Source: Klebsormidium nitens (taxonomy: Eukaryota; Plantae; Klebsormidiophyceae). Taken from it: a stretch of 64,000 nt of DNA. This document shows positions 1 to 33,608 of this stretch, in pieces. Every line of letters begins with the position of its first letter. Position 1 is the stretch's first letter. A model generated the notes under the pieces. That model searched no databases. It saw only the letters and a program-made list of their open reading frames with translations, and was not told the DNA's origin. The translations under genes and the position numbers were made by a program. Location: assembly GCA_000708835.1 (NCBI GenBank), contig DF237401.1, positions 1 through 64,000 on the forward strand, in the 5' to 3' direction.

Positions 1-347
1 TTACTGAAGCCGATCCATCCGGGATATTACGCCGTCTTGCAGACAGCTACGCAGTGCGTCGTTGAGACGTAACCACCGCCGTTTCGCTAACTCGCGGTCA
101 ACGAAATCCTGTCGAGAACGAGGTTAGGCTTAACCAGTCGTAATCGTTACAACTACACGTTCTTGTTGCAAGCGCACGCGTCAAGCACGTCCTCCTCGTC
201 AGGATCCCTTTCGACTTCTTAAATCAGCGGACCCCGTTCGTTTAGTCTGACAAACTCAGCATTTAAGTCCAATGTCTGACCTGTAGGTAGATTCACCTTC
301 GAAAGGTAGCGGGCCTGAAACAAGACACTTGTTTCTTTCCTTCAGGT

Positions 348-2469: not shown

Positions 2470-2610
2470 CTAGGGGGTCGCCTCTGGCGACCCATCCCTG
2501 CCTTTGGCAGGGGATGGGGTCGCCTTCGGCCACCCCATCCCATGAAGTTTTTGCCGGTGAGGGCCGCCAGGGCGTGGCGGGGGCGTGGCGGAACGGCACG
2601 CGCCCACTAG
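2470..2610. repeat. 141-bp GC-rich triple-hairpin element with CTAG ends (MITE-like)
   Basis: Hairpins GGGTCGCC-tct-GGCGACCC (2475-2493), ATCCCTGCC-ttt-GGCAGGGGAT (2494-2515) and GGGATGGGGTCGCC-ttc-GGCCACCCCATCCC (2511-2541). Ends ctaggggg / cccactag are inverted with 1 mismatch. Confidence 0.55.
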
Positions 2611-9779: not shown

Positions 9780-12700
9780 ATGGCGCGTTCCCCGACGTAC
9801 GACCCTGCTGCGGGCATGGGCGGGCTGTCCATTTCGGAGGGCGAGGGCGTGTCGTCCAAGGCGGCGCGCTTCCCCGTGCGGCCCAGCCCGGGCACAATCG
9901 GGCGAAGGGCCAACCTGTTCGCCAACCACTTCTTCGCCAGGTTCAAGCCGGAGCTGGAGCTGCACCACTACGACGTGAGGAACATAAGGTTTTTGGACTG
10001 GGTAGCCGTCGCGCATGTTGGGAAGGAGAAGAAAGTGGCTTTTTGCAAGGAAAGCATGGTGCACGCAAGAAGCAGTCAAGCCTGGGCCTTTGCAAACCTG
10101 AGAGGCGCTTCCGAAAGCAGCATGCACTGAACCCTTCGAAGGGGTTGTCAGAACCAGAGAGTTCAACTGGTGCATGGTCCTTTCGTAGGACGGGTGCACG
10201 TCCGAGGAAAGATTTCAGTATGGTGTTGCCCATTCTTCCTTCAGCATTGAGCAGTGTTGCAACGGAGGGAAAATTTTGGAAGCTTTTGGTCTTGCTTAAA
10301 AACGCAATGCAGTATCTGTGGGTGTACTCCATTTTGAGACAGGCCGTCAGTGAGGACAAACGGGTGATTGATGTCTCGAGTCAGCACTTGTGTTTGAGAA
10401 AGTATAGACTGTGCTTTCGAAGTTTCATGAGTCTCTCTCTAAGAATCTCGGAGGGAAGTCTCCTTGGATTCTCAATGGTTACATAAAAGGTTGAATGTCC
10501 TAAAAGAAAGCCCCTCTGTTCCAGACTCAGAAAGAAAACGTACTCTGAAGGTCCTAAGGCTTTGAATTTTATTCCGCTCGTGCATGCCGGCAGAACCCCT
10601 TGAAAATTTTCTTACGAAACAGCATACTTGAGGCTTTCGAAGTAGTTAGTTTCGTTTCCGCCCAATCATTATGACGACCTTGTCAAAGAATGTGTTCGAG
10701 GTCAGTGAAGTGCGGGCTGTGTTGTTCCGCAGGTGTCGCTGACCCCTGAGGTGACGTCACGCGGCGTGCGCCGTGCTGTGATCCGCGAGCTGGTTATACA
10801 GTACCAGCACACAGAGCTGGGCCGCAAGCTGCCCGTCTACGATGGCAACAAGGTGAGCGCCACGCAGGCTTTTCCACTTTCATAACACCTGTGCGAGAGA
10901 CCTGATTCCGCGAAAATTTTCCCAAACTTCAGAAGCCGTACGTTCCCCTTCATGGGAACTTTCAAGTAAGGACAAGTCTATCAGACATTTTGAAATTTGG
11001 CGATTTGGAGGCCACGTCCCCACTAGGAAGAAAATCCCCTTCAATTTTGCCACTTCTAACAAAGTGTAGAGAGATATCGAAAAGCTCGCAGCTCCGAATT
11101 GCTTTTTACTGGTTTGGCTTCATAAGTCGCAATGCAGATTCTGTTCAGCAAGTGAAGCACGGTTACTGACTCCGTGCTACGTGCCTGGTCCGCAGAGCCT
11201 GTACACGGCGGGCCCGCTGCCGTTCCAGAACAAGACGTTCGACATCCAGCTGCCCGAGGAGGATGAAGGGCCCCGCGCAGGCGGAGCACCGTGAGTGGGA
11301 CCATCAAGCTGACAAGTTAACAGTTTCTTTTACTCCAATAAGTTCTCGTGCTTTACAATCCTTGGTGCGGATTCGTTGGCTTTGCTAAAAGCAGGATCCA
11401 GTCCAAAAAGATACCTCTGAACTTCTTTCTGAAAGGTTCTCGTGAGGTTTTTGAACGGCCACTTCTTTCTGTAAGGTTCTTGTGAGCTTTGTGAGCGGCC
11501 TTCTGAATTTTGCAAATGACAGTGAAAGCCCTATCTTCTGACTGTGGGGATCCCGGTCCCTCTGTTCTGCGTCGTCAACGGGATCAAAGCTGCTTTCCTT
11601 GGGGTGCTGGCAGCGCGCGCGGGCGCGAGGAGCGCCGTTTCAAGGTGGTGATAAAGATTGCTGCGCGCGTGGACCTGTTCCGCCTGGACGAGTACCTGGC
11701 GGGCCGCCTGCCCGAGGCGCCGCAGGAGGCGCTGCAGGCGCTCGACATCGTGCTGCGCGAGCAGGCCACCATCAGGTAAAGCGTCGCAACGCCGCAGCGG
11801 GCCAACCGCTGCCCGCGGGGGACAGATGCCGCCGTTCTAGTTCACTTGGCAACTGTTCTGGAAAGTCTGCCAAGCTGTGCCTCACGTGAAGTAGAGAAGA
11901 AGAGGCGAAATGACGGTCAAAAATGAATTCCCTTGCTGCAGCTCCCGCTGTAGCAACCGAAACCTTAATTCTCCGCTCTGACATTGCAAGTAGGTCGCAA
12001 CCGTTGAGGTTTGGATGAGGCTCCTGCTTTCTCTCCGATTCGCCCGTTTCACCGAGCCTTTTCTCTGCTGCGTCCAGGGACGTCCCCGTGGCCCGGTCCT
12101 TCTTCCACTCGGAGCTGGGCACTCGGCAGCTGGGCGGCGGCCTGGTCGCGTGGCGCGGCTACTACCAGTCCCTGCGCCCCACGCAGAGCGGCCTCTCCCT
12201 CAACTTGGGTACGAGAGCGGAGCATACCGATAAAGGAACCTCTTCCGGCAAGCCCGGCTTGCTGCAGCAATGCGCGAGAGCAATTGGCAGCATCCAAACC
12301 ATCCTAATTGCTTCCGAGGATATACATTTTGGAATTGTTTCAAAGCCAAGCGCGTTTCTTCCTTCCTTTGCTCACCCGCCTCCGCTGTCCTGCTTCCAGA
12401 CACGCTGTCGACGGCTTTCTACGAGCCGGTGGACCTGGTGGAGTTCACGTCGCGCATGCTCAACCGCAACGTCCGCCAAGTCCGCGCGCCGCTCAACGAC
12501 GCCGATCGAGTCCGGGTGAGCGCGCGCACTGTGGCGCACATCCTGCACAGAAAATGGTCGAGAAGAGAATAGAAGCTTTCACGACCAGGCAATGCCAAGT
12601 CTTCTGCTGCTTCCTCTGTCAAACCAAGAAAGCGCAGTGTTAAAGTCGATTGAGAGATTGAGATTAGTTTTGGTCGCCATCGTAAAAGGACCCCGGTCCG

Positions 12701-15700
12701 GCTTGGTTCTGGTCTGGTGAACCTGTGTAACTCGATTCGTATGGTGGTGCATGCAGCTGAAGAAGACGCTGGTGGGCGTCAAGGTGGAGGTGACGCACCG
12801 TGGCGACGAGCGTCGCAAGTACCGCATCTCCGGGATCACCAACCAGCCCATCAGCCAACTCAGGCAAGACGCCCAACTACAGCTACTCTGCCGCTCTTTC
12901 GCAGACTCCTGTCTATTTCGCTTTCTTTGAAAACGCTTGCGCTGGGTTGCGAGCTGTCGCAGAGAAGCGAGTTCTCTGAGTCGGGTCTGGATTCCCCTTC
13001 CACTTGCCTCTTGCTGAGCCCCCGGGTGTGCCGTGCTCGCGCAGCTTCCCGATCGAGGGCCGCCAGACGAGCGTGGTGGATTACTTCCGGCAGCAGTACA
13101 ACTACGAGATCAAGTTCGACTGGCTGCCCGCCGTCACCGTGGGCCAGCAAAAGTCGTCCTACCTGCCCTTCGAGGTCTGCGTCATCGTGCCCGGCCAGGT
13201 GCGCGCGCGTACAAGCACCTTCCAGGCAGCCGTGGGAAAAGCGAGCGCTCAAGTCACAGCGTCGAGCCTTCTGATTGTGCACCTTCAGCAAGACAAGACC
13301 ATGGTTGTGCTGCGGCTTTTACAATGCTCTTAAGTGACGCACTTCAAGACAACAGCTACTTCTGATCGATATATGCTGTGACAGCAGCCGGTCTTCTTCT
13401 TCTGGCTGCTGACTTCGCCTGTGCTCTGCTGTTGCTTGTGTCCAGCGCTACTCCAAGAAGCTGTCGGACAAGCAGGTCACGGAGCTGCTGCGCGCCACGT
13501 GCCAGAGGCCGCACGAGAGGATGGGCGAGATCCAAAAGGTCAGAATGCGCAATGGCCAACCACCTACTGAACAGCGGGGATTGTGGAATGGCCTGCCTGG
13601 TCGTTCCTTATGATACAAGTGAGAGGAGGAAAGTCCCTGTATGAATACATAAAACTGCAAAAGCTCAGGACGAACTGCGACTTGCGCCATGATTAGATCT
13701 TCCTTCCGCAATCTGACGATTGAAGACTGGCTGCCTTGCATTCTGACTCTGCCGTTCGTTTTGGGCAGATCGTGGACCGCAACAACTACAACAACGACCC
13801 GTACGTCAAGGAGTTCGGGCTGCACGTCAACCCCAAGATGGCCAACTTCGACGGCCGCATCCTTAACCCGCCCAAGGTGAACGACAACCTGCATCCTTGA
13901 ATCCGGCGGAAAGGTCCTGATCGGGTTCGTGGAGTAAGCTGTCCATTCAACCGAGAAGAAAGGAGCTGACTGCTATCGTTGTGAATATGCTTGCGTGTGA
14001 GTTCGCGTCCGACTCAGACGTAGCATTGCCTAACTTCAAGGAAATCCCGCTTTATTCTTTTTCGTCGTTCCCCTTGCTGTTCATCGTCTTCTGTTTCTGT
14101 CGTGACGTTTCGTTTTACGCTTGCCGTCTTTCTGCAGCTGGTGTTCGGGCGGAATGCGGAGGTGATGCCGGTGATGGGCACGTGGAACATGGCCGGCAAG
14201 GTAAGTTGTGCTTCGAGAGGTTGAATTTAATGTGATTCTTTCTCCCTGTCTCACTACGGTGTCACGCTCTCACGCGCACTCGTACCCACCTACAATAAAA
14301 CCGTCCAGATCTTGCTTCGGCTGCTCTCGAGTGATACTCACAGAGTCCCTTGTTGCGCCTGACGTCACGCTTCGTTCTTTCTCGGCTGTGGTGCAGCAAC
14401 TGGTGACGGGCAGCCAGTGCCCGACGTGGGTGCTCATCAACTTCTCCCCCGCGCGCTGGGTGGACCCGGGGACCGCCAACCGCTTCGCCACCGCGCTCGC
14501 CAACACCTGCAACCAGCTGGGCATCGTAAGGCCCTCAAAAATCTTTCTGGATTTGGCTGTCATGATTATTCTGGTGGATGTTAGCAACTTTTTGAAGCCG
14601 TCAAACTCAAAGGCCAGTATTGAGTTCAGGGGTCTACAATCTCCATGTCTGCTTTGATCAGTTACAGGATGAGCACGTTGCGTCACTCTTACGAACACGC
14701 CTTGCGTTTCCACTGCACCTGGCTGATGCGATCTCCCGCGCTGACGTCACGCAGCAAATGGCGCGGCAGCCGGCGACGGGGACGGTGGCGGCGGACCGCG
14801 CGCTGCGCGACCCGGACCAGCTGGCATCCACGCTGCGCGGGGTGTGCGACGACCTGCGCAGCCGCAACGGGAAGATGCCGGACCTCCTCGTCTGCATCCT
14901 GCCCGACATCGGGCCCTTCTACGGTCAGCAACGCGGGCCCTGCGCAACCATTGGCTAGACTTCGCGGGCTGCTTTTCAGTCGTCAAAATTTGAGCTGGAA
15001 CCGCATATTGCAGGGCCCGAATCTTGATTTGCAACTGTGAAAAAAGGTGCTTCACCTTTCCCATAGAAGATGGAGGCTGGCAGAAGTCCCGTACCGTACA
15101 AGAATCGGTCCGTAAAGACAGTGGACAAAATTCAAATCTAAGTTCCTATGATGTGAAGCCTCCTTGATTGCAAAGAGCGATCTCAATCGCACTCTTCCAG
15201 AACATCGGGAAATCACACCAGGAAAGAACCTGATATTGAGATCTTTTTGTTCGTTGACTTCGTACTTAACGAACCGGGACTCTGAGCGCGCGGGTATGCA
15301 TACAGGCGACATCAAGAAGGTGTGCGAGACGGAGATTGGCGTGCTGTCGCAGTGCGTGCTGAGCAAGCACGTGGGCAAGTGCCAGGCGCAGTACCTCTCC
15401 AACGTGGCGCTCAAAATCAATCTAAAGGTGACGGCCCCCCCTAACGGACTTGCCTTCGCGCTGGCTGCAGGTCAATCGATCTACACCCTAATGCTTGCAT
15501 ATAAAGTATCTGGAACATGGTGGTAATCCGAAACTGGCAAATGATCCGTTAAATGACGAAGCAAGCGCTCCGATCTGCCGAGATGCATCTTCCTTCGTTT
15601 CTGCAGCCACCATTTTCGCATATTTGCATCTGGAGGTTAAGAAGCCAGTTTCTCGTGCGCAATTTATCTTTGGTTTTTCGGCGCGCAGCTGGGCGGCCGC

Positions 15701-18274
15701 AACTTCTTGATGGCGGACGAGTACGCGAAGAAGCTGCCCATGGTGTCCGACAAGCCGACCATCGTCTTCGGGGCGGGGCTCACGCACGCGCACCCGGGGG
15801 AGGAGTCCGCCTCCATGTCCGCGGTGCGCGCGCGCCATCTGTCACCTGAGACACCTTTCCGTTTTGCCGGGATCCCGTTTGTTGAAATTTTTCCCACGAA
15901 AATGTTGGAAATTTGTCTTTGTAATTCCAAGTTTTGTGTGCGTATGATTACCCAAAGCTCTTGTTTCACGAATCCAAGAGGATAGCAATGGTCAATGGTC
16001 AATGGTCAATGGTCAGAAGATCTTTGTTCTGCCGGTTGTTTTCCATCTTCCAGCATGCCCAATCGCACCCTTTTCAACCGCTTCCCCGCCGTCTCTTCGC
16101 AGGTGGTAGGCAGCGTGGACTGGCCGTACGTAAACCGGTACCAGTGCCGCGTGAGCAGCCAGCCCGCGCGGCTGGAAATCCTGCAGGACCTGTACACGTG
16201 CAAGCGCACCGCGGGCGGCCAGATGCAGCACGGCGGGGTCATCCGCGAGCTGCTCATCGCCTTCTACCAGGCCACCGGCCAGAAGCCCGCGCGCGTCATC
16301 TTCTTCCGGTCAGCCCGCGTCAGCCGGTTCCAATATCCGACGTTTCGGCTCTCTGAGCTGGCAATAACTGATTTTGCGTGCTGCTCGAAGGCAGCCCTCA
16401 GGCCTGCCGTTCAGAAGTGCGGTTCTTAAGAAGCAAGTTGTGCATACCATTGAACACCACGAAAGCTTCAAGAATGTCAAGACGGAACGGATCTTAACGG
16501 TATATCTTTTCCATCGACCGGCTGTTCTTTGCGTGCAGGGACGGTGTGAGCGAGGGACAGTTCCAGCACGTGCTTATGTATGAGCTGGACGCGATCCGCA
16601 GGGTAAGACGGCTTCGCTTCGAAACGAGACTGGACTGTTTGCAACGTGCAGGGGGCTCGTCTGATCGAAAACATCTTGAATCCGTGGCGGGGCATCACGC
16701 GTATGAGATGCTGAGGAACTTTTGGAGGTCACTGAGAGCAATGAGCGCTTTTGATACGTCTCTGTTGTACGTCCTCAATCCTTCGTTAGATCCTATTACA
16801 ATTGACACGTCACAGGAGGCACTTAAAATCCTTTGATACTATCTTTAAAAGCTGTCGAATCGAACTTCGGCGCTCTTCTGCAGGCGTGCGCGAGTCTGGA
16901 GGCTGGGTATCAGCCGACGGTGACCTGGATCGTGGTCCAGAAGCGGCACCACCTGCGCCTCTTCCCGGGCGACCAGAACAAGGACCGCAGCGGCAACACC
17001 GTGCCCGGTAAATATCGTTGAAAGGACATATTTCTTGTTGGGGAAAGAAGTCTATGCTTTTCTGCTCAACTTCTGATCATCTTTTCCTCCTGTTGAACAA
17101 TCTGGCCTGTCTCTGTCTGCACGTTTGAGGTGATTCACTCTGAACCCCTGACCTTTAAGGGTTCGAGCATCGTTGCGTCGTCTTCTGCCGCGCTCACCAG
17201 TACCCAGACGCCCACTTTGCCGCGACCCTTCCCCCGCTGACTCGTGCTGCCTCCCGTGTGCGCGCGCAGGCACGGTGGTGGACACGACGGTGTGCCATGT
17301 GCGCGAGTGGGACTACTATTTGTGCAGCCACGCGGGCATCCAGGGCACGAGCCGGCCGACGCACTACCACGTGCTGGCGGACGAGAACGGCTTCAGCACG
17401 GACCAGCTGCAGAACATCACCAACAGCCTCTGCTACACCTACCAGCGCTGCACGCGCTCCGTCTCCATCGGTCAGCGCCGCGACCCAGCGCCTTTCGGTC
17501 GCATTCTAGACTCTTTGTGCTTCATCTTCCGACGGAGAATATGTTGTCTTTTCTTGTCACCGAGCAGTAAGTCTACGGCATCTTTGGAAGTGATGAAAAC
17601 CGAGTGCGGCTCGGTAATTGCGGCTCGATCAGTGGAGCGCCGCGATCGGCGCGGCTTGCTGAGCCCATCCCTGGTTGGCTGATGCGTTTCTGTCCAGCTT
17701 CTGAGAACAAGTCAGGGGCTTGGGTGCAAGCTTTAGTTATGGGAGTTTGAGCTCAGAATATAATACGTGGTCGAGAGCTCAACGCCCCTCATTAGGCGAA
17801 AGCCTGAAGACATCATCATTCAGTGATCGTTTGATTCTGAAGTATCCATCCTTCTCCGAGTTTAGCCGAGAAGGTTTTCGTGGCGCGAGATCGTCTTGCA
17901 CCATCTAGATTTCTAGGAAGGTCCTGCGAGAGACCAACAAAATCCTCACATCAACAGCTTCTGCACTCTTCTGCCATTAAGCCTTATCTTCTTGGCCTCA
18001 CGATCGTTGTGGCGAGCATACGTATCCATGCATTTGTTTCAGTGGCTTCTTTCTGGTGCGCGCAGTCCCGCCGGTGTACTACGCAGGCCTGGGCGCTTTC
18101 AGGGCCAAGTTTTACCTGGAAGGCGGAGAAAGCAGTGGCGGAGAAAGCAGCAGCGGCATCAGCGCTACGGGGGGCGCCCCCAGCGCGCGCACGAGCACCG
18201 GCAGAAGCTCGCGCGCGCCCGCGCCCATGCCGCCGCTCAAGGAAAACATCAAGAAGACAATGTTTTTCTGCTGA
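9780..18274 (+). CDS. AGO: Argonaute (N, PAZ, MID, PIWI; AGO1/5/10-like), 20 exons, 900 aa, predicted slicer-inactive
   Basis: Exons 9780-9974, 10733-10852, 11196-11290, 11614-11775, 12078-12208, 12400-12515, 12757-12863, 13045-13198, 13446-13538, 13769-13876, 14138-14200, 14397-14525, 14755-14923, 15306-15427, 15689-15823, 16103-16308, 16539-16602, 16884-17007, 17270-17470, 18066-18274; total 2703 nt, in frame. Motifs [111 protein letters not shown]-terminal MFFC. Subclade is by resemblance only. Confidence 0.96.
12864..13044 (+). other. Non-canonical GC-AG intron in the AGO PAZ region
   Basis: AG|GCAAGA donor at 12864 and gcgcag| acceptor at 13044 give the in-frame QPISQLSFPIEG. Confidence 0.8.
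15986..16013 (+). repeat. Intronic minisatellite (CAATGGT)x4
   Basis: Four perfect 7-bp copies in AGO intron 15. Confidence 0.9.
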
Positions 18275-19491
18275 GGAGAGTCACGGGAGGACCTCGGTCA
18301 AACGGTTTAGGAAAAGTTTGATGGGCTGTTTATGGAGAAAGAAGCTGATCAAGGATGAAAGGCTGGCATGGCAAGCAACGGATTACGCGGCGTGTGCCCT
18401 TTGTTGACCGGTCGGCCAGATGAATGAACCCACCGTAGCTGAGGTGAGTGTAGATCGTAACAAGTGAAAACGGGAGTCTGGGAGGGATTCTACTGGTACG
18501 TTGGTTTATATGCTTAATCGGAACTAGTTTCGATGGACTAGAAGCGAGTAGAAAATGGTGATTGGGTATGTGGGCCGTGAGAAGATCAGGCTTAACGAAG
18601 CAGGTGTACAGTTAGCCGCTGATTGAGTGGAAAGTTGAGGACACACGAGCTCGTACTGTGACTGGTCTTGTATACTAGATAACTTTGCCTGCAACATGTA
18701 CATATTCCGCTTCTCTTTGAAGTCAGCAATTATAAATAGGTTCTTTGACGCGGGGAAGCATCGTGGACCGTTGGTTGAGGCTCCTCGACTAAGCAGCCAG
18801 CCCATTGAGGTGCAGTTATGGCTGCCACTTACTTTCAGTGTCAATGCTGTGGAAAAGGTTGAGAGTCAAGCCATACCTTCGCTTAAATAGATGAGTATTC
18901 TCATGCAGCTGGATGCACCGCAAATTCATGCTCTGCGGGAATGCAGATGATCCGATGGAGTTCACTGCTTGGCAGGTTTGGCTCTTGAATAGCCGCCCCT
19001 TGTTCTGGCAGCGAGAGTATGGATGCAAGCAGTCGTGAAAAAGCAGAGCTTACCTCGTGTATTCTTGAATGCATGTAAATCGTTCGCCGGCGCTGATCCT
19101 AAAAGCTTGTGGCGGTTGTATACGTGTACCTGAACTTGACTATAATATAATCAGTTCTTTGAACGCTCAGCAAAGGTTTTGCAAGAACCTTCGTGGCTGA
19201 ACAACGGCTCAGGTAATGCAGAAACTGATAAAAGAGGATTGTAAGTTCTCCGATCAGAGTCTCGAAGTCCCTTTTGGCATTGTCTTGCCCTGGTCGTGTT
19301 GCGTGCGACGAGCAAGGCCTTGTTCACGCGGCAATTCTGAGGCGGGCCGGTGCGGCCGTCGGATGTGCCACGTGACAGCATCGGACGGCAGGACCTGGGT
19401 CCGCTCCACCTGCCCACAAAATGTGCGGCACAGGGTTGGACGCCTTTATATGGACAAAGAAGCCGCACTTCTGCAACGCCAGAGGCGTACA

Positions 19492-20452: not shown

Positions 20453-22023
20453 CATTAGGAAGCTTTGCTTAGACGCCTCTGGCGTTGATTAGCTTGTGCT
20501 GGGAAACGAGCGTTGCATATGCCCTCAGAGAATGCGTCTTCAGGCTCGTGGGACTGGTTGTTCCAGAAGATCTTTGCCGTTCAGTCATGCCTGCAAATGG
20601 CAGGTCTGACGGCTCAATCAATACGACGCGCCCGCAAATGCGAGGACCGCTGCTCAAAAAAGAGGTTCAAGACAACGGAACCCCGTCTGCTGAGAAGGAG
20701 AAGAGGCGAAGCAGGGCAGGATGTTGGTGGCAGGAAGTTCTTAAAAAAGAAAATGTTCGGCTTATAATCCGAGCAGCCTCTTGTACGAGCTTGGGCTCTC
20801 GTTGATGCCCAGCGGACATGTCCCGCAAGATTTGACGCTCGAATCGAGTTCTTTTAGATGACGTAGTATTGTGGGCGCATCGAGGAGACTCTCTGCAGCT
20901 GGATCTACAAGCAAGTACGCACTCAGCCGCATTCGAAGTCAGTTTGTGAGTTAGCTTTATCAACTTTAGTGACCTGATTCAAGTGCTGAGGGAAGCGTCT
21001 TGGAAGTGCTTCACACGTCTTAAATTCTCCGGTTTCTTTTTGATAAATAATCTATGAAGGTACGGTCCGGAAGAAACAACGCATAATAGGTCAGGACTAC
21101 AGCGGACCATGTGCTTTGAGGACCCGCGATTCTGTCACATGCAGCTGCCTGCTTCGCCGTTTCGTCGCGCAGGGTATCAAGTGCAACATATTTATCTACG
21201 ACACTCAACTGATTTCGGCCCAGGCTGAGGCACCAGTCGAAAAGGCGATCCTACCGCTAAACGTTTCCATGCTATTAGAGGCAATCGAGCCAGCTGTTCC
21301 ACTCAGAAATGCCACCTCAGATGATCGACTATAAGATGATTTTGGGAAATCAGACATTTGATTTGTGGTAGAACGGTGGTTAGAAATGGTCATGTAAACC
21401 ATGGCGGCAGATTATTGCACGCCTTCAGATGAAGACCGCGCCAGCACTGCGATCCACCTCACTTCTGAATGTACGGTGCATTCTGCACATTACTTTCCGT
21501 ACCTTACCGCCCCCGCCATGCGGAGAGCGAGTGGTGGCAAATTTGACGCCCGAGCCGGGTCAAAGTGTTGAGTATGACTTTCGGCCCGTGCGAAAAGCGT
21601 GAGAAGATATCACATCTTGAGGTATGTAGAGGTTCAGGAAATTGTACAAGTCAAATCATTAAAACCTACTGTACCTCCAATGGCTTTTGAGGCAAACATG
21701 ATGTAAAGGCGCGCGTTGTATCGCGAGCGCGACTGCTCCACATGCGTTGATCAAAATGTAGAGGGTCCCGATGCATTTTCACACTACCTCTGCGTCCTAT
21801 CACATCATTTGACTATTCAATGGGCCGATTTTAACCTGACACAGGTCACAGCATTCAAATGAGCACAATTGCTCGTAACTTCCAACGACATGTCAACCTC
21901 AACCTTACCACGTTTCCATCACTGCCGGCTTCACCCGTCTGCGCGGATCTGTACAACCGTCCTTTTAACTACTGCAATCAAACCCAATGCTCAGGGCTTT
22001 CTCGAGCCCCGCCACCCGGTGCG

Positions 22024-25000
22024 CTAGTCCTCGTCCTCGTCTTCCTCTTCCGCGTGCAGCGCCCGCTTGGCGGTTTCGAAGACGACCCAGGAGAGGCCGG
22101 CGACGGGCACGACCTGCGCCACCTGCGCGCCGACGCCCTTGTACAGCCCGGCCACGCCCTCCGTGCGCACCACGCCGCGCACCGCCTCCACCACGTTGCG
22201 GTACGCCGCGTTGGCCGCCTTGCCCGTCTCCACCGCGGGCAGCACGCTCACGCTCACCTGCGGGAATACCGGGACAAACGTGAACAACGCGCAGAGGAAA
22301 AATCGAGGATTCAAGGAGGATTTGCGAAGGCAACGGCGGCAGCAATTGGCAGGCTCTGCTTCGCCTGATCTGAGCAGCAGAATGAGGTTCCTGCATTTAC
22401 TGTCTTGATTGAGAGGCGATAAAGATGGGTCTCGAATCATCAACGCTGAAAACCGTTCAACGCGTCCCCTTATGAACCTCTTCACCCTTAAGACATCGAT
22501 GAACTCTTGAGCAATTTGAGATGCACAGGCCATCGTCAGGCAATACAAGATGCCGTCATAAAAAGTCACTTGGGGTTGCGGCGCGAGTACAGCAGCGGCG
22601 GACCGCCACCAGATTAGTGCGTACCTGCTTGCGGGCGACCTCGAGCGGATAGGTCGCCAGCTGGCTGACCGCCCCCGCCGTGGCGCCGAAGAGGAGGGTG
22701 TACCCAGCGGGGACCTGCACGCACGGGCAGAACAGACACTTCGATTGAGTTCTACCGATAAACAACCTAGACTGAGATTGCTCACACAGAAGCAGGCCAA
22801 GTAACAGTTGCGAGTGTGACGGCAGCTTCTGTCAGCGACAGATTACACTGGCAGCGGCGGCGCGCTCACGTGCTTGCGGCCTGTCCTCTTGCGGTAGCGC
22901 TCCTTGAGCGTGTCGTAGGTGTAGTAGTTGACGGCGGACTGCGGCACGATGCCCAGCAGCGCGGGCACCACGCCACGGTATAGCGCGGGGAGGCCGCCCT
23001 CGTGGAGCATCACCTCCCGGAGCGCGTCGCCGAAACCCTTGTACTTCTCGGGCTGCATAAGACAAGAGGGCGTGAGGGTCAGCCTGGGTTAGCATGAACG
23101 TAGTAACGGATGTCGTGAAGTCCTGGCTAGCAGTGTTGCTTTCCAAAGCCTATGGCCAAGACGTTGACACCGCTGGTATCGTTAACGTAGATGTCTTAGT
23201 ACGGTGTGCTTCATTCAGTCGAACCAAGAGAACAATCGGCTTTACGAGCCCATGCCTCATAACTGTTTCCATTCGATTCATTGTGCCATGTCATTGGTCA
23301 AAACCGCCTGGGATGGCACGAGCACCTATGAAGAAAAGCTTCAACTGGAATTGAACGACCAGATTTCTTCGCTCTTCTTGCACCATCCGAAGCTGCTCCC
23401 TTGAGCTGCCGCACTAGCCCCCAAGATGCATTGCAAGGAAGCGGTTGGGGAAAGCGCCCAGAGGAAAGGCGACAACAGAAGATGCGAAACTGCACCTTAA
23501 GCAACACTCTCCGCTCACCATGACGAGGACGCGGTCCTTGAGCGTCTCGAAGGGGTACGCGACCAGCGTGTTGGCCAGCCCCGCGGCCATGCCCGCCCAC
23601 GTGGACTCTGGCACCTGGCGCGGCAGCTTATCCAGCAGCGGGATCTGGTGGTCGCCGGGCCGCCCGCGCCGCTTCAGCTTGGCCTTCACCTTCTCGTACG
23701 TCACCAGCTGCACCAAAGAGGGATTGTACAGTTTACAAAGAGAAGTCGAGAAAGGACGAAGCAAGAGATTGCTGCAGAGGCAGGACACTGAGAGTCGACG
23801 AATGGCTAGCTTGAGTGAGGCCTCTGGTTGGGCGGCAGAAGAGAGCGAAGGACAACAAAATCCAACTAATTTTGTAGGATTATGAAGCTCCGAAAATAGG
23901 CCAGGCGATTTTTGGATCCACAAGGTGGCTGTCTCGATGTTGCGGATTTAGATGTTCATCGATGGACGACCTCAGTTTTTCACCGTGATGGAGTTTGCCA
24001 AGCAACAGGAATCAACGGAAAAGTACAGGAAGCTGAACAATCGATTTGTGGTCAGCCTTTTCATAATGTGAATTCAAAAGCGCTACTCTCGCTGGGGGCG
24101 CACCTCGACCGACTTGGTGAGCGCGACCCTAAGAACATTGATGCCGAAGGAGCCGGTGGTCTGCTTGATCGGCCAGTTGCGACCGCTCTTGCGGTTGAGC
24201 GTCTTGACCACTTCCTTCACGTTGTCCCCCGCTCGGCCCCCCAGCAGCTTAGTCCGCACCACTTCCAGGGGCGTGGCCGCGGTTTGGGCAATCGCACCTG
24301 CACACAACAGGCACGGCGAGCTTGAAGGCTTGCTGATCGACAGAGTAGAAACCATGTGAACAGACGTAGAAACAGCTGCGAGTGCCAGCAATTCCTTGCC
24401 TGGAACACGCTTCGAAGTACGAACAACACCCGGAAGAAGCCTTGTCGACAGCTCGTGGTAAATGGCAAAACGACAAGACTAGCACCCAACAAACACAATT
24501 CTGGGACGAGAGACTCGAAAGAGGAGCAGCTATCCCACCTGCAATCCCGCCTGCCAGTAGCTCCTTGACAGTCTTGCTGTGGATGCTGATGAAGGGCGTC
24601 TCCACGCGTTTTACTGTCACGCGCACGTCGTCACCCACCACGTCACGCGTCCGCTCCAGTGCGTGCTTCGCACCCTGCGCCACCTCCTGCAATCATTTAA
24701 TGGGCCTCAGTGCCGCTCAATGGAAATCCAATGCTTGCGGGCAGGGCGGCAGAATTGATAATATGAGGCGGCTTCTTTGCTGGTCAATTGGACTATACCA
24801 ATAACAGATTCAAAATACTCCACCGATCTCACAAACGTGGAAGAGAAAGTCACCCGTATCGGAGAAAATCAGAAAACATTCCGAGCGAACCTCTCACGAA
24901 ACGTTGAAGCACCGATAGGATGTGCGGAACATTGGTACAGAAAGGGCCTGAAAACCTGGAGCCCTACCTCAGCTGTGCCCTCAACATAGCCAGCCGTGTA

Positions 25001-26411
25001 TCCTGCGCCCTCCACTACTTTATCAGCGGCCCGGTCCAGCTTAGCCCCCAGCCCCCTCCCCGCTTCTTTGGCTTCCTGCGCAGTCCCGCTGACCACCCCT
25101 TTTGCGGCCCCCACACCCTCTGCTATCTTGTCCGTCCCCTCGTCCGCTTTCCTGCCCAGCCACCAGACTGGCTTGGCTGCGGTCCTCTTTGCTTCCTCCG
25201 CCTTTCTTGTGGCCGCTTCCCTCGTCCTCTCTGCATCCTCCTCCAAATCTTCAGCAGTCTCCTCGACCCTTCCCTTCAATTTCTGTCCTTTCTCGCCCAC
25301 TTTATCCTTCACCTCCCCCAGCTTCTCTTTACTCCTCTCCGCCGCGCCCTTCACCTTCTGTGCCCCCCGCTGCGCAGCCTCTTGTGCCTGCTCCGCTTTC
25401 TCTGCGGCGGCTCGCTTGGCATCGTCCGCCTTCTCCGCTGCCGTCTGCTCCGCAGCATGAATGTTGGACCACATCTTCTGGGCGGTCTCCTCCGCCGCCC
25501 GGTCTGCTTTCTCTCTCTTCTCCCACCACTTGCCCTTCACTTCCTGCTTGGCATGCTGGCTCTGCTCTTCCACCGTCTCCTCCGCGCGCCGCGCCTTTTC
25601 CTTGACGCCTTCCTTGATCTGCCAGGCCTTGTCCCTCACCGTGTCAATCGTGCCGCTCGCCCGCTCTGCTACAGCATTGGCCCCTCTTTCAGTCCCGCGC
25701 TTGAGCCTGCTGCCTGTATCGGACGCCTTCTCAGCAACTGCGCACATGCACCAAAGACCCGCACTAATCAGGCACCATCAGAGGGGCATATACAGAAAGG
25801 AACTGCAGTGGCGCTAGGCCTGCAAGTCCCATGATGGAAGGGTGCCGTGGCTGGGACATCAGCGTGTATGGCAGGTCAGCATTTTAAAACAGTGTTTGAA
25901 GCAGCTACAGACTTTCGACAGGTCTAAAAACAGTATCAGAGTGGTTAACAATGCAAGCAAGGGCACTTATCATGACTTCCTGCCCTCAGCTTTCCTTCAT
26001 GCACAATCAGTCAGTCGAATTCAAAAACGCCATGACCAAGATACCCCTGCACCGAAGACCAACTGTAGAAAGTCCTGAACAGCCAGTGCTTGTCGTCCAC
26101 CCTCAGCATTGCCTTTTCACGTCTCTGCTGACTCTTCCAAGTGCGCGTTGTGCCCCACCTTCGTCCGCATGCTGCTCCCCCCTCTGCCTGCCGCGCTCTG
26201 CCGCACCGCCTGCCTTTCCCTTGAGGTGCTCCAGCTGCTCCTTGACGCCCCGTGCCTGCTCGTCTGCCTTCTCCTTGACGTGCCCTGCCTCGTGCTGCAG
26301 CGCTCCCTGCACTTCTTCCCGCGTCTCCTGCAGCTCCTCCCACGCGCGCTGTCCGTTGCGCTCCGCCTGCTCGTGCTGGCCCGACCCGCGGCCGATCCCA
26401 AAGAGCCCCAT
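22024..26411 (-). CDS. Fusion protein: N-terminal LEA-like (group 3/LEA_4-type 11-mer) region plus SLC25 mitochondrial-carrier domain (BT1/Brittle1-like adenine nucleotide carrier), 8 exons, 686 aa
   Basis: Exons 26411-26159, 25737-24968, 24686-24539, 24297-24104, 23707-23519, 23052-22870, 22714-22625, 22257-22024; all GT-AG, total 2061 nt in frame. Carrier signatures PLEVVRTKL, PFETLKDRV, PLEVARKQ, plus LYRGVVPALLGIVP and LYKGVG. The first 341 aa are K/E/A/Q/R/G-rich with 11-aa periodicity. The carrier part is near-certain; the fusion junction is predicted. Confidence 0.8.
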
Positions 26412-26652
26412 CGTTCAGGAGCTGGTGGCCTCGGCTTCTGCAGGCCTCGAACGCAGCTGGGCTCCGCTTTCGATCAGCGCCAACTGGGATGGCGATGACT
26501 GGGCCAGTCTGTCAGCGGTGCTTACGAACAGCTCGACAGCTAGCGCAAAGGCAGAACGAGCATGACCAGCTGGGGGTTGACGCCCAGGGTGGCAGCCAAA
26601 GCAGCCATAGCAGAGCAGCTGGCAGCTAGAGCTACCTGGCTCCGAACTGGAG

Positions 26653-26742: not shown

Positions 26743-27038
26743 AACCGCTGACATGCTGGTAAAGTTGCAACTTGGCAACTTGCAACACTCAGGAGTCGGG
26801 TGCGTTCAGCCGGCGCAAAATGGCGGTTGTCCGCCTGCGCCGGCGCAATTACGTGATGGCATGCTCTTCCTCGAGCCAGCTCACAAAAATTGTAGCGCAT
26901 GTGTAAACTTCTGATTTCTAGGGTTGCAAGTAGTGACCACTCTCCACTTCTAATGCTAGTCGAAGTGGGCCATTATACTCTTGAGTATGCATTGAAGCGT
27001 CCTGACACTATTTGCGCTGCAACTTTCTTGTTTGAACA

Positions 27039-30000
27039 ATGGCTGCAAGCTGGTGTGTTCCCCTCGCCGGCGGTGGCCGCTGCTTGTCTGCTGGCAGGTG
27101 GCTGGAGCTGTGCAGATGGGCCCGCTGCTTCTCCTCTGCCCCGTGCAGCAGTCAGTCAAGGACGATTCTGAAGAGTATTCATGTAGCTTTGGAAACAGAT
27201 GCAGCTTCTGCTGTGGATGTCGGTGGTCCGAAGTGCTCACAAGAGGCTGCAACTGGGTTGCATTCGAGTTGTCCTCAGGGGTTTGTGTCTAGTCAGGCAG
27301 GCAGGTGGTGGTCCTCCCGGCAGATGAGCAGCCATGCCACAGCAGCTACTGGCAAGGAGGGGCACGGCGCTGGGGTGAGCAAGCACAGCAAATTGGGCAC
27401 CAATTGGTGCAGTTGTCAAGACAGAAAGTGTATCAGACGAAAGGATCAAAGCGCTTTGTTTCAGAAAGGTCTACACTTCATTTCGAAGTCAATCCTGCAA
27501 TTGTGCCCCTTCAGTTGAGAGCTTGCTCTGGAGATGTATCTTTTTTCGAAGGTGGCTGGTTCAAGATTCACATTTTTGTCTCCGAGCCGCAGCTGACATC
27601 TTGATTGGCGTCTGCCTTTCGAAAGACGCAGCCATTTTGAACCAACAGATGCCACCATTCACCTTGTTTAGTGCCTCTTTGTTTCCCTTCGTTTCCAGGT
27701 CCTAGACTTCCCGGGTGCACGATTTTCTTTTGTGAACGAGCTGCACGTGGTGCCGGAATCGACGCCTACCCCCATCCCTTGCTATCGGGTGCTGGACGAG
27801 CTGGGCCAGCTCATCCCCGGGGCAAAGTACACCCAGGTCAGCTCGGGGGCGCTCTTGCCTCTCACCAGCACGGCAGGACCTTGGACCTCCTTTGAGGCCC
27901 CTAGCTGGAGTGATGCTGTCTTGTCATTTGCCCATCGCCCAGTCCAAGTGCTTCAAGTGGACTTCTGACATATAAGTTGGCCTTCTCTCAAACGGTGCGC
28001 ACCGCGCGCCAGTGCATGGTCTCCAGAAAGCTAGGTGGTTCAGTGGTCTGACTATGCCCGCTCGGTGTTGGCTGCCAGGTGTCGGAGGAGCTGGCGGTGG
28101 CCATGTACCGCAAGATGGCGGTGCTCCAGTCCATGGACCTCGTCTTCTATGACGCGCAGCGCCAGGGCCGCTTCAGCTTCTACATGACCACCGCTGGCGA
28201 AGAGGCCATCAACATTGCGTCTGGGGCTGCCCTCTCTGACCTGGACACCATCTTTGCGCAGGTGGGACCACTTCTGGTCCAGGAGCTTGGCGAACCTTCA
28301 TTACCTTTGAGTTGAGAAGTTTGTTCTGTAGTTTTGGATCGTCCCAAGACGATCGAAGCCGCATCTCAGGTCGGTTTTACTCGCTGCAATCGGCACGAGC
28401 TCCGGTTGAAGCCCCAGTTTCACTTTGTGGCCGCAGTATCGCGAGCCTGGCGTGCTGCTGTGGCGCGGCTTCTCCATGCTCCAGTTTGCCCACCAGTGCT
28501 TTGCCACCTCAGGGGACCTGGGCAAGGGCCGCCAGATGCCCGTCCACTACGGCTCCAAGGAGCACCGCTTTCACACCATCTCCTCCCCGCTCGCGTGAGT
28601 CGCTCTCACTTTCTGGTCGGTGGGGGGTAACCTCATGTGCCGACTTGTAGCTGTGTAAAGACCCGGCTCATCTTAAGATTTTCAAATGGATAAGCAAGCT
28701 TTTCGGAAGCTCTCAAAGCGTCTGCAAAACAGGTCAGACACGGCCTGCTTAGCGGAACGATCTGAAACAAGGTCTTGGTTTCTCTTAATCCTGTTTATGT
28801 GGAATATTTATAACCGTCTTAGATGCCTTTCAATGTGACCGTCTGCGCTGAGTGCTTTTGTTGGGTGCTCGCCGAAGCCCACATCCTCCAAACACGTAGT
28901 TTGCCTTTTTCGGCAAAACTGAACATCGCCTTCTTGCTCAGGACTCAAATCCCGCATGCTGTTGGCGCCGCATACCACGTCAAAATGTCCCCCGAGGATG
29001 CGTGCGTGGTGACGTACTTTGGGGAGGGCGCTGCCAGTGAAGGCGACTTCCATGGCGCCATCAACTTTGCGGCCACCCTCGAGGTGCCCGTCATCTTTGT
29101 CTGCCGCAACAATGGCTGGGCCATCAGCACGCCCGCACGCGAGCAGTATCGAGGTGAGGGGACTGCTTCCATCGTCGAAGAATAGCGCCCGAGAGATGCA
29201 GCTGCCCCGATGATGCGTGCACTGACCTGGCTTTGCTGGAAGGGCGGGCTGCAGCTCTGCCTAGAGCATGAGAGGTTCATCCATCAACAATAGAGGGTTG
29301 AAGAAGGTGGAATCCAATTGTCACAGCTGAATGCAGCAGGTCATGCTTCGCCGCGGTCCCAGTACAGTACGGTCCCTTTCCTCAAGTAGACTTGCGTAAC
29401 TTATATCACCATGAGCGGACCGGAGGCTCTCGGCTTATTGAAACTTGCAAAGTTCATGGGGTGCTCAGGTTGACAGCCCTCCTCCCAACAACTGCAGGGG
29501 ACGGTATCGCGGGGCGGGGCCAGGCATACGGCGTCCGGTCACTTCGCGTTGACGGCAACGACACGTTGGCCATGTACAGTGCGATGAAGGCCGCCCGAGA
29601 GATGGCGGTCACCGAGGAGCGGCCCATCCTGCTCGAGGTGCGGTTCGCCGCAGCTGGTCAACGCTCTCAGCCTGCTACAGTCCTCTGGTCTGTTTTCGAG
29701 CACAAAAAAAAGTATGTCGAAATGAATGATCACAGTCTTATCCATCCCGATTCTGACCAGTATCAGGGGGCTTTCGGCTGACGAAGTCGATTGATAACGA
29801 CCGAGGAAAAGCAGCCAGCCCTTTGCATCAGCTTCTCAGTCGTGTCTGATGACAACTCCTGACGAGGTGTCAATTCCTCCGACTTCGGGCTGTCTCCGGT
29901 TGGCTGAAGTGCGAGGCCCAAGCCGTCGAAGTTGACTGGCCCTCGCAGACGACGTTGCACTTCTCGCTGCAGGCCATGACTTACCGGACGGGCCACCACA

Positions 30001-30611
30001 GCACGTCGGACGACTCGTCGCGGTACCGCGGGGCGGCGGAGATCCAGCACTGGAAGCTGCAGCGGGACCCCGTGGCGCGATTCCGGCGGTGGCTGCAGGG
30101 GCAGGGCTGGTGGGACGACGCCCGCGAGGAGGAGCTCAGGAAGAGCGCGCGAGCGGAGGTGGGGCGCGCCAACTTGAACAGCCCAGCGGCTTAGCGCTGT
30201 GGGCTGGAAGGGTTCGTCGTTGAATTTCAGGAACGAGGGGGTCCGGGGAAGAATGCAGACTGCAACAGGCGTGCTAGCATGGCGTCGACCTTTTCGCAAG
30301 AGTCTATCTTCTTTGACGAGGTGGCTGCACGCCCCAACCTGTTCAAGCCGATCATTGTAGATGCGACGGTCACCACTTACGTCCTTGCGTAAGATTGGCA
30401 ACGCGAGATACACATCTAAGCTGTCCGAGTATCTGTGTAGGTGATTGCGGCCTTGGACACGGCGGAGGCTACTGACAAGGCGCCCCTGCGTGACCTGTTC
30501 ACGGACGTGTACGATGCGGCCCCGCCCAACCTGGTGGAACAGGAGCGGCAAGTCCGAGCCCACGTGGCAAAGCACAGGGCCGACTATCCGGACAATGTGC
30601 CACTCGACTGA
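27039..30611 (+). CDS. BCKDHA: Branched-chain 2-oxoacid dehydrogenase E1 alpha subunit (mitochondrial)
   Basis: Exons from 27699: [15 protein letters not shown]; [15 protein letters not shown]; [31 protein letters not shown]; [34 protein letters not shown]; RVDGND; [12 protein letters not shown]; ends PDNVPLD* at 30611. The N-terminal transit-peptide exon (ATG 27039) is uncertain. Confidence 0.93.
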
Positions 30612-31683
30612 CCGCTCAGGCTCGGGACAGGTATGTACATAGAGCTAGAGACCCTGCGGGAAGGTAGCGACCAGCAACCGGAGTTCGTGCGTAGTACACA
30701 AGTGCGTTGAGTAGCATGGGAATGCGTAAGGGCAGACAAGCTAGAGCAACGAGTATAATCGACCGTCACTGACATCCTATTGCAGGAGATTGGTCAACAT
30801 GAGCGTGCAATGATCATGTTAGGAAGCTGCAAGCACGGGTAGCAGCTCGATGGTCGGGGCTTGGACAAAAAATGCCATTGCAGTCAGACATACGTTTCAA
30901 CTTTAGTGCCGCGCCACAGTCTCTAGAATCCGGCCGCTAGCATGGCACAACCTAGTACGTCCCATGCTTTGCAATGCAGTATAGCAGATGAGTGCCTCGA
31001 GATGTTCAGTATTTGTGTAACGCTGCAACGCTGCAATATGCATGTTCAATATTGCTGACATGTTTCTGAAGAACAAATTCCTGATTGGACATATGTACGC
31101 GGGCGCTCCTATGAATCAGCTCTGCGGCTGACAATATTAATGGCCGGGTTGTTTGATAGAGCTCACGCAGCATGTACCGCCGTGCATCAAAAGTCGTTTA
31201 GATGGACTTGACTTTTGCCCGGGTGCATCATGGAACAGGCTGTCGTTCTACTAGACTCTGCCCAGATGCAAACAGATTCGACCAATGATTGTGAAGATGT
31301 ACTGTTTCACCAAATTAAAGCTCTGTGATTGGCATGCTGTGAAGCATGTGCGCGCGTGCAAGCCAGTCTGACCACGACTATGTCGAACCGCAACTTAGGT
31401 AGGATTAGATGACGCTAAAGCTGGACCAGAATAACCTTTGATATGCGGCCATCGTGCAGTATTTACAGGGTTTAAAAGGACCGAAACTACCTGGCCCAGG
31501 ATCCCAATATGAACATACTATGAGGAGCTGGGCCGTGTAAGGACCAGCTATACATTCTGCTCTACAAGCTACATCCTACAGAACTAACGCGTCCTCGTCA
31601 ACGAGATTCGTCGAGGCTACTGAACTCCGAGATGTTGAGGATATGCTTACAGAGATGGTAACATCTCCACGGCGCCCACCGCT

Positions 31684-33608
31684 CTAAGCTACATGCCGGG
31701 CCTGCAAAGCCTCTGCCTCCCGCTTTCGAAGTAGGGTCGAGCTCACCTTTTCAGTGGACATGCTGTCTCCAACAAGATCAACAACGACCACCTGCAGAGG
31801 GGTCTGGGGAAGTCAGAGTAGTCCCCGCAGATCAAAAGATGCAGTAAAGCATGGTGCGAATTGTGCATTCCAAGATCCTCTCAAGATTCTCAGTTGATGC
31901 AGATCCTGTCCAACAAGCAGCACGTAGCACCTTGGGCATGTAGCTATCTTCTGTTTAGCTTCATTTGGCAAGGTGGTACAATAAGAGACATTGCAAAGCA
32001 ATCAATCCGTTTAAGATGAACATCCAATGGATTCCACCTGACAAAGCCGAAATGACGGACGTAGAAACGGCTCACATGCAATGTCGAAAGGCCCTTTTCA
32101 GCTCGCTTCTGATTGACTGCGTGCCCTCCTTTCTCAGTCTCTTTACTGCAAAGGCAGGGGCAAAGAATGAGTCTTCTGCAGTCTACTGCCCAAAGAAGGG
32201 CGCCTCGCTGGCTTTGACTACCCGGACAATATCCTCAGAAGTTGCAGTTGAGGAGGAAGAATGGTCATACTGTATGTGCTCCTGTCGGCGAATCCGTAGA
32301 TGGAGATCTACAAAGCGAGATGGAATCCTACAGAGCCAGGTCCAAGACTCCTCCGCAGACTACATGGTTACATCCTTCCTCACCTGACCACAATGGCCCC
32401 AAGTCCTTCGTCAACGATAGAAGGCCCATAAGGATCCACCAGTGGTTCTGTTTGCACCAAAAGGCTGCTCTTTATCGACTGTGCTGCAATAAACGAGAGC
32501 TTGAACTTCTGTTTGGCCTCTTGGACCACGTTTACAGAGGATTTTTGCACCCTTCCCACCACCTTAGGCTTTCGATGTTTCTCACACATGTTCCTTCGGT
32601 TTGATAGTAATCTACTTTAGCGAGAATGTCACTCGTTTGGGGCAACATGCAGTTGCGATGGAGGCTGTGAAGGCAAGGAGATGAAAACATGACCGGGCAT
32701 GGAGACTGGAAGCACGTGCCTTGATGTATCTTTCAACGCTTTGTCGGCGTGTTTCCAAGGGCTCAATCAACTTGGCATACTGCAAGAACGTCGGTCGTGT
32801 CAGTGGCAAGTTCCTCCCCCGGGGGGCATTCGACGGTATTCTCCGAGGCCTAGTGTCTGCACTGGCTGGCTCCGAGCTAATCTGGGAAGAATGGTTGCTG
32901 AGCAACAACACAACACGCTCGTTTAACTTGGGCCAAAAGAATCATAAGCAAGGGCAATGAAACAAGAAAGACTGTCTGGTCCTCACCTCTTTATTCTCCA
33001 AGAGAGGCCCTGTACTGACACCCACAACGACGCGCTCTGTTGCAACGTTGGCAGCAGCCTGTCAACAGCAAGAACACTAGGGCTGAACGAATTGAACGAA
33101 CTCTGTTTGAAATTTGAGCTAGTGTAAATAAGCACTGCATTTCAACGATGCTTTGCGGCAACCTTGTGGACCAAAAGAACATCAGAAGCTTTTCTTGTGG
33201 GCAGGTGCGCGTACAAGTGAAAAGATCAACTCTTAGATCATCCAACTGCTTTAACATTAGCCAAAAAGCAGGTTTATGAACGGAGCAAGGCGCACCTTAA
33301 GAGCAGAGGGTCTGCCTTGAAAGTTTCGCGATGCCATACCTTGAGAAGAGCTCGATGACCATCGTGCAGATGATCAAAAGTACCTCCCAGCACAACAGCT
33401 CGAAAAGTGTTTGTTTCTCCAGAATCGAGGTTGGAATCCACCATGACGATGCTGAACGTCGCTGCAGCAAATCAAGAGGACGGCGAACCACCACCACGGC
33501 ATGCAAACTCCTCTGGATCAGTGGATGCCTACCTTGCTCAGGCTGCACTCTCGAGTCCAATGCCGTATAGCATCGCATGCGTCTCCCCTGCCAGCCCTGG
33601 ATGGACAT
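31684..33608 (-). CDS. COAD: Phosphopantetheine adenylyltransferase (CoA biosynthesis), 7 exons, ~200 aa
   Basis: Exons 33608-33533, 33461-33340, 33058-32987, 32779-32720, 32478-32384, 32145-32076, 31791-31684; total 603 nt. Motifs [19 protein letters not shown] (HxGH), [60 protein letters not shown]. Exon 1/start codon is less certain. Confidence 0.92.
32479..32719 (-). other. GC-AG intron in PPAT
   Basis: AAG|GCACGT donor at 32719 joins YIK to SIKS in phase 0. Confidence 0.75.

Follow-up and report, generated by a model that had tools for sequence, protein, structure and literature searches.

Does the stretch of Klebsormidium nitens DNA considered here (64,000 nucleotides, positions 1 to 64,000 of contig DF237401.1, assembly GCA_000708835.1; hereafter the window) encode a single protein in which a late embryogenesis abundant (LEA)-like repeat is joined to a membrane carrier of the SLC25 family? 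The initial annotation had proposed such a fusion, with a BT1-like mitochondrial carrier as the C-terminal partner. We rebuilt the gene from the sequence as a minus-strand model running from 26411 to 22024, with eight exons, a coding sequence (CDS) of 2061 nt and a product of 686 residues; the borders are canonical GT..AG at seven of the seven introns. The protein is laid out as a 341-residue N-terminal arm, a 40-residue linker and a six-helix SLC25 carrier. The junction between arm and carrier lies exactly where it had been placed: the arm exon ends with ..GYVEGTAE at GAG/GTAGGG (24968/24967), the next exon begins at TTGCAG/GAG (24687/24686), and the intron of 281 nt that separates them is in phase 0 on both sides. 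The claim that the carrier exon has no start of its own also held, as no Met is found in frame ahead of ELLAGGIAG in exon 3. The sole Met between residue 2 and helix 3 is M174, which is not conserved in the counterparts from related algae. Retention of intron 2 would bring in a stop after 33 codons (TGA at 24869). Upstream, a TGA at 26417-26415, in frame with the start codon at 26411, lies two codons 5' of the ATG.

A run search with the 4.5-kb stretch returned 20 runs that hold 30-55% of its sampled words, and the higher shares fit spliced RNA, since the 2.06-kb CDS alone amounts to 46% of the stretch searched. Four of the runs, each from a separate study (X1, X3, X8 and X11), were aligned to the locus. 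Single contigs of 2519, 2490 and 2539 nt (X1, X3 and X8, respectively) run from the 5' untranslated region (UTR) to the 3'UTR with all seven introns spliced out, and identical splice joints were found on overlapping contigs in X11. RNA spliced across 24968-24686, as implied by the initial annotation, is thus present in four runs from four studies: the joint that skips 281 nt (24685/24967; CT..AC on the plus strand, equivalent to GT..AG on the minus strand) occurs in each of them, and no contig within intron 2 was found in any. Because contigs that lack seven canonical introns can derive only from RNA, the fusion transcript is real. We conclude that the locus is a genuine in-frame fusion, with one gene, one mRNA and one open reading frame (ORF).

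The same fusion was found in related algae, whose loci were retrieved with a profile of the window's carrier exons, the short ORF products being 60-98% identical to the model. L001 (Logan, 18.7 kb) has the same eight exons, phases and splice sites and an intact product of 684 aa, which is 88% identical to that of the window in the arm and 95% in the carrier. L002 (a JGI metagenome contig of 34.9 kb) also encodes an intact product, of 695 aa, with exons 1 and 2 longer by 9 and 24 nt, respectively, and the reading frame kept; here the identity is 61% in the arm and 84% in the carrier. For exon 1 taken by itself, the amino acid identity to the window is 88% in L001 and 52% in L002. Two further Logan loci, L003 and L004, cover the end of the arm, the junction and exons 3-4, and give partial identity data only. 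A literature search for the run accessions of the related contigs yielded no paper. The phase-0 junction between arm and carrier is identical in all four. At least three related algae keep the fused locus with the same exons, phases and intact ORF, and the join between arm and carrier is older than the split of these taxa. By the method of Nei and Gojobori, the ratio of nonsynonymous to synonymous substitution rates (dN/dS) between the window and L001 is 0.11 for both the arm and the carrier (arm dS 0.54); between the window and L002 it is 0.14 for the arm and 0.22 for the carrier (arm dS 1.84). With a dN/dS of 0.11-0.15, the arm evolves under purifying selection and is a selected coding region.

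What kind of carrier does the arm precede? Exons 6, 7 and 8 exceed the Pfam Mito_carr (PF00153) cutoff of 22.3, and exons 4 and 5 give partial matches. Three carrier repeats were recognized, with PLEVVR, PFETLK and PLEVAR in the odd-numbered helices and YEKVK, YDTLK and FETAK in the even-numbered ones; every repeat satisfies the rule P-x-[DE]-x-x-[KR] for odd and [FY]-[DE]-x-x-[KR] for even helices, and all six signature motifs are kept in L001 and L002. BT1/pANT1 proteins are the plastidial-mitochondrial adenine nucleotide and ADP-glucose carriers of plants. In the exon-profile search, the best named matches were land-plant proteins described as 'adenine nucleotide transporter BT1, chloroplastic/mitochondrial' and a K. 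nitens carrier of 451 aa, P0006. Residues 374-686 of the fusion protein align to BT1 proteins with 37-40% identity (E 1e-60 to 1e-67). P0006 is itself 60-71% identical to plant BT1 proteins, and for this reason we consider it to be the canonical K. nitens BT1 orthologue. By maximum likelihood, the three fused carriers group together with 100/100 support inside a BT1 clade (100/99) that holds K. nitens, Closterium, Selaginella and seed-plant BT1 proteins, at the end of a branch of 3.1 substitutions per site. The description as BT1-like is borne out by the best matches, the identity and the tree alike, and the carrier is a rapidly evolved paralogue within the streptophyte BT1 (Brittle1/pANT1) clade. 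This streptophyte placement fits the assignment of the DNA to Klebsormidium nitens, as do the K. nitens paralogue P0006 and the occurrence of identical sequence in runs labelled with two organism names. When exon 8 alone was used in a word-index search, one fungal carrier was matched. A hybrid profile scaffolded on P0006 was dominated by BT1 orthologues, with no protein of 680-700 aa among the best 120 matches.

In a comparison with 141 BT1-clade proteins, 142 columns reach a conservation of 95% or more in BT1, and the fused clade retains only 78 of them. Contact-point columns were assigned by what we take to be the published scheme, anchored on the signature motifs. Both the matrix and the cytoplasmic salt-bridge networks are kept, as are the BT1 Arg of contact point I (Arg447) and the Gly-[VI] pair of contact point II (Gly552-Ile553). 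Other positions have changed. The Arg of helix 1, the Lys of contact point III and the Tyr of helix 4, each present in 141 of 141 BT1 proteins, are all Gln in the fused clade (Gln395, Gln657 and Gln556, respectively); the Gln brace of helix 5 (141/141) is Ser611, the Pro of helix 2 (140/141) is Leu or Ile, and the conserved GLFRGN motif is replaced. All of these replacements are common to the window, L001 and L002. The scaffold seems fit for transport, and with the two salt-bridge networks preserved, the carrier probably retains a transport activity. That it moves nucleotides, as the initial annotation had suggested, is doubtful, because two positive charges are missing from the binding site, those of the helix 1 Arg and the contact point III Lys. 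With these two otherwise invariant basic residues now Gln, the substrate is probably less anionic than ATP, ADP or AMP.

The arm is of a very different make. It consists of 18% Ala, 16% Glu, 11% Gly, 11% Lys and 8% Arg, with a single Pro, no Cys and seven Trp. The 11-residue periodicity noted earlier over the N-terminal 341 residues is pronounced: self-similarity scored with a BLOSUM matrix is 0.315 at offset 11, whereas no offset in any of 200 shuffles exceeded 0.097, and the peaks (offsets 4, 11, 18, 22, 25, 29, 33, 36, 40 and 44) fit an 11/3 helix. A Fourier spectrum of hydropathy over the whole arm showed no excess over shuffled sequences. The mean helical hydrophobic moment is 0.38, versus 0.20±0.02 in shuffles (z 8.5; none of 500 shuffles was as high), and the L001 and L002 arms have similar moments. 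AlphaFold2 (AF2), run on an alignment of the four arm sequences, predicts helices at residues 2-143, 153-225 and 229-255, with a predicted local distance difference test score (pLDDT) of 54.7 and a predicted template modelling score (pTM) of 0.26. Several Trp-containing motifs are kept (KAW, KWWEK and KPVWWLGRKAD), as is a further motif, GYTAGYVEGTA. On inspection, the N-terminus of the arm (MGLFGIGRGSGQHEQAERNG...) soon turns acidic, with acidic residues from residue 14, and a comparison of the arm with the N-terminal extensions of BT1 proteins, including that of P0006, revealed no similarity. N-myristoylation at Gly2 was considered and rejected, as the motif is not satisfied and is not conserved. 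P0006 itself has, at residues 119-162 and just ahead of its carrier domain, a short charged helix that weakly resembles YtxH (E 0.02) and is not detectably similar to the arm. A BT1-like protein from Closterium sp. NIES-64 (P0101, 551 aa) bears an N-terminal extension of 256 aa, rich in Ser, Thr and Ala and unrelated to the arm. Long extensions may be common on algal BT1-type carriers.

Pfam searches with the arm gave sub-threshold matches only. The best Pfam match was to Apolipoprotein A1/A4/E (E 2.8e-9; 37 bits, below the cutoff of 90), and YtxH scored 20 bits against a cutoff of 37.5. In a comparison of language-model features, the closest clusters bear LEA_4 (0.86), which lies below the 0.9 level and is a lead only; a perilipin-4-like cluster was also among the neighbours (0.76). 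No EF-hand family matched exons 1-3 at E≤1 in Pfam, and no other regulatory domain was detected. A phmmer search with arm exon 2 against 1.84 billion representatives returned two weak bacterial matches of the DUF3618/YtxH type that reflect composition only. The same search missed the called arm ORFs of the relatives (L001, 6685-7425; L002, 6262-7209), and its blank is for that reason no proof that the arm is an orphan; blanks from this library are unreliable for queries of such low complexity. Scanning metagenomes with arm exon 2, and likewise with exon 8, gave no match.

How might such a protein have arisen, and what could the arm do? Most likely, the gene is a neofunctionalized BT1 paralogue that bears, in place of a transit peptide, a tethered amphipathic arm active on membranes. 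BT1 targeting relies on the N-terminal extension, and AtBT1 that lacks it is directed to mitochondria (PMC3355725). A BT1 duplicate would have exchanged the plastid transit peptide at its N-terminus for the arm. Because the N-termini of SLC25 carriers face the intermembrane space and extension-less AtBT1 is mitochondrial, the most likely arrangement would have the carrier in the mitochondrial inner membrane and the arm in the intermembrane space. When hydrated, the arm would be largely disordered; upon loss of water, or at high ionic strength, it may fold into long amphipathic helices on acidic membrane surfaces. A soluble mitochondrial group-3 LEA protein goes from disordered to helical as it binds acidic, inner-membrane-like membranes, whose properties it alters (PMC10808001). 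In the fusion protein, the carrier would serve as a membrane anchor, and tethering would give the arm a very high local concentration. The arm could then protect the membrane and the carrier, or alter the activity of the carrier with the state of hydration. We assign a probability of about one half to this explanation as a whole, that is, to a BT1 paralogue that anchors a drying-responsive LEA-like arm in the mitochondrial intermembrane space. A broader proposal, which we put forward only tentatively, is that the protein is a transporter bearing its own LEA-type protectant or hydration sensor, shielding carrier and bilayer or switching transport with hydration, and that it belongs to a more general tendency in Klebsormidium to attach LEA-like repeats to proteins of organelles.

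Several observations weigh against an anchored LEA-like arm on a BT1 paralogue. Neither the arm of the window nor that of L002 matches Pfam LEA_4 (PF02987) at E≤1; the arm of L001, the best among the relatives, reaches 14 bits (E 0.048), with a gathering cutoff of 51.1. Of the domains expected from the initial annotation, LEA_4 and three copies of Mito_carr, it is thus the carrier repeats that were recovered and LEA_4 that was not. Its description of the arm as LEA-like holds as to type, in that the arm is an amphipathic 11-mer repeat rich in Ala, Glu and Lys, as in group 3, and fails as to the Pfam family; moreover, the arm has seven to eight conserved Trp, which are atypical of LEA proteins. 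Since the LEA_4 threshold was not reached, we call the arm LEA-like only in its chemistry: it would be LEA-like in physical type, and membership of the LEA_4 family is not established. The AF2 model of the arm is of low confidence, as is usual for conditionally folding repeats. Owing to the long branch, it is uncertain where exactly within the BT1 clade the fused carriers belong, and the tree has no explicit sampling of the BTL subfamilies. Finally, the arm could act as a coiled-coil or oligomerization module, or be cleaved off after import.

The coiled-coil possibility leads to the strongest competing explanation, in which the arm would have nothing to do with drying and would be a regulatory or assembly helix, or a coiled coil, in the intermembrane space that dimerizes the carrier or docks partners, as in the carriers of the AGC and APC type. 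We consider this unlikely. SLC25 carriers with regulating or dimerizing N-terminal domains do exist (PMC4250520, PMC11539162), the AF2 helices are very long and unbroken, and the conserved Trp motifs, together with the invariance of KPVWWLGRKAD, point to specific contacts and away from bulk protection; the dN/dS of the arm is also low for mere filler. However, the arm shows no EF-hand or other regulatory domain, its composition and 11/3 periodicity fit amphipathic helices at a membrane surface over heptad coiled coils, and it evolves faster than the carrier, as the identities to L002 indicate (61% versus 84%). Cleavage after import is part of a different explanation, whereby the internal signals of the carrier would bring in a LEA-like arm that has no presequence and the linker would then be cut, so that a free protectant is released and a normal carrier remains. 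We identified no cleavage motif in the protein, and we know of no precedent among SLC25 carriers for import followed by cleavage; we regard this route as improbable, even though the acidic N-terminus of the arm appears to lack a presequence, the linker is strongly conserved (GDD[VL]RV.VKRVETPF[IL]SI) and the carrier, without an in-frame Met, is not translatable alone.

The sub-threshold resemblance to apolipoproteins raises the possibility that the arm faces the cytosol and binds lipid in the manner of apolipoproteins or perilipins, with the carrier residing in a single-membrane organelle or at a contact site and being tethered to lipid droplets or to another membrane. The strong hydrophobic moment and the perilipin-4-like feature neighbour are in line with this idea. 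Nevertheless, both matches lie below threshold and are typical of the cross-matches that any amphipathic 11-mer repeat produces, the N-terminus of a carrier in a double-membrane organelle faces the intermembrane space, and carriers of the BT1 clade are known in plastid envelopes and mitochondria, not in peroxisomes or lipid droplets (PMC3355725), all of which makes a cytosolic lipid binder quite improbable. An artefact, whether two separate genes for a LEA-like protein and a carrier that were misjoined or a functionless read-through chimera, is already contradicted by the data and would be highly surprising. Contigs cannot reveal transcript ends or rare isoforms, and the 'RNA?' label of the runs is a guess. 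Yet the intron-less contigs from four studies, the absence of a start codon from the carrier and the retention of junction, phases and ORF in at least three related taxa, at dS of up to 1.8 and with the arm under constraint, all stand against it.

Returning to the reading of the gene as a BT1 paralogue with an anchored amphipathic arm, its product can be compared to several known systems. With BT1/pANT1 proteins (AtBT1, ZmBT1 and P0006) it shares the three Mito_carr repeats, both salt-bridge networks and contact points I and II; it differs from them in its very long branch, in insertions in matrix loops 1 and 3, and in that an arm plus linker of 380 aa, without similarity to BT1 extensions, stands in place of the transit-peptide region. 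Like group-3 LEA proteins, such as pea LEAM and tardigrade HeLEA1 and RvLEAM, the arm is rich in Ala, Glu, Lys and Gly, periodic over 11 residues and predicted to form long amphipathic helices, with no Cys and almost no Pro. Unlike them, it remains below the LEA_4 threshold, has the conserved Trp and is covalently joined to a membrane protein instead of being soluble; also, mitochondrial LEA proteins occur in the matrix, whereas the arm would lie on the side of the intermembrane space. The known N-terminal domains of carriers are EF-hand sensors. As in the aspartate/glutamate carriers (AGC; aralar/citrin) and the ATP-Mg/Pi carriers (APC/SCaMC), a large N-terminal region precedes a complete carrier, and in AGC and APC this region is located in the intermembrane space (PMC4250520, PMC11539162). 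The AGC and APC domains are folded calcium sensors with EF-hands, whereas the arm is a low-complexity helical repeat with neither an EF-hand nor a folded domain. Its helical periodicity and sub-threshold Pfam matches also recall exchangeable apolipoproteins, apolipophorin III, perilipin and YtxH; with scores far under the cutoffs, this likeness is one of repeat physics, and common descent is not established.

Full-text literature searches turned up no SLC25 carrier described as bearing a LEA-type or 11-mer amphipathic arm, in line with the earlier statement that no described fusion of this kind was known. The fusion is real and expressed, and close relatives have kept it. LEA-type proteins are credited with protecting membranes and proteins during drying, and how they find their clients is still debated, since they are soluble and bind weakly. 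The fusion offers a one-to-one pair of a LEA-like segment and its client, which can be compared with and without the arm, and it comes from a streptophyte alga of a lineage used for studying the adaptation of plants to land. Because the binding site of a BT1 duplicate was rebuilt after the fusion, the gene may also reveal a new substrate specificity among SLC25 carriers.

The features of the gene and its neighbours are collected in Table 1. L001 is collinear with the window over about 19 kb, a region that includes both neighbouring genes: upstream, a gene of the E1_dh type (2-oxoacid dehydrogenase E1) and, downstream, an Argonaute/Piwi gene, both of which are conserved in L001.

Table 1. Positions, in the window, of the parts of the fusion gene and of the two adjacent genes.
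Feature	Positions	Strand	Content
5'UTR	26412..26606	minus	RNA contig ends at 26527-26606; sequence read directly
Exon 1	26159..26411	minus	ATG and arm residues 1-84 (MGLFGIG...); phase 1 at end; from model and RNA
Exon 2	24968..25737	minus	Bulk of the arm, residues 85-341; amphipathic 11-mer repeat rich in A, E, K and G
Intron 2	24687..24967	minus	281 nt, GT..AG, phase 0; separates arm from carrier
Exon 3	24539..24686	minus	Linker (EVAQGAKH..GDDVRVTVKRVETPFISIHSKTVKELL) and beginning of carrier helix 1; no in-frame Met
Exon 4	24104..24297	minus	Helix 1 signature PLEVVRTK, altered first matrix loop, helix 2 with contact point I Arg447
Exon 5	23519..23707	minus	End of helix 2 (YEKVK), loop, helix 3 with PFETLKDR
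Exon 6	22870..23052	minus	Second matrix loop, helix 4 with contact point II Gly552-Ile553, YDTLK; Mito_carr 40.1 bits
Exon 7	22625..22714	minus	Helix 5 with PLEVARKQ; Mito_carr 24.8 bits
Exon 8	22024..22257	minus	Third matrix loop with 7-aa insertion, helix 6 with Gln657 (contact point III), FETAK, acidic tail, stop; Mito_carr 46 bits
3'UTR	21682..22023	minus	RNA contig ends at 21682-21771
Upstream neighbour (E1_dh type)	27032-32082		L001 counterpart at 1-5326
Downstream neighbour (Argonaute/Piwi)	13469-18280		L001 counterpart at 11948-16525

Within the part of the 5'UTR that is covered by RNA contigs, a short upstream ORF of seven codons (ATG..TAG) is found at 26563-26540 on the minus strand. 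Faint contigs in introns 7 and 1 (22251-22608 and 25845-26116) were seen in X1 and X3, with a depth of 3-4 versus 44-800 for the mRNA contig, depth not being comparable between runs; they are probably traces of pre-mRNA or DNA.

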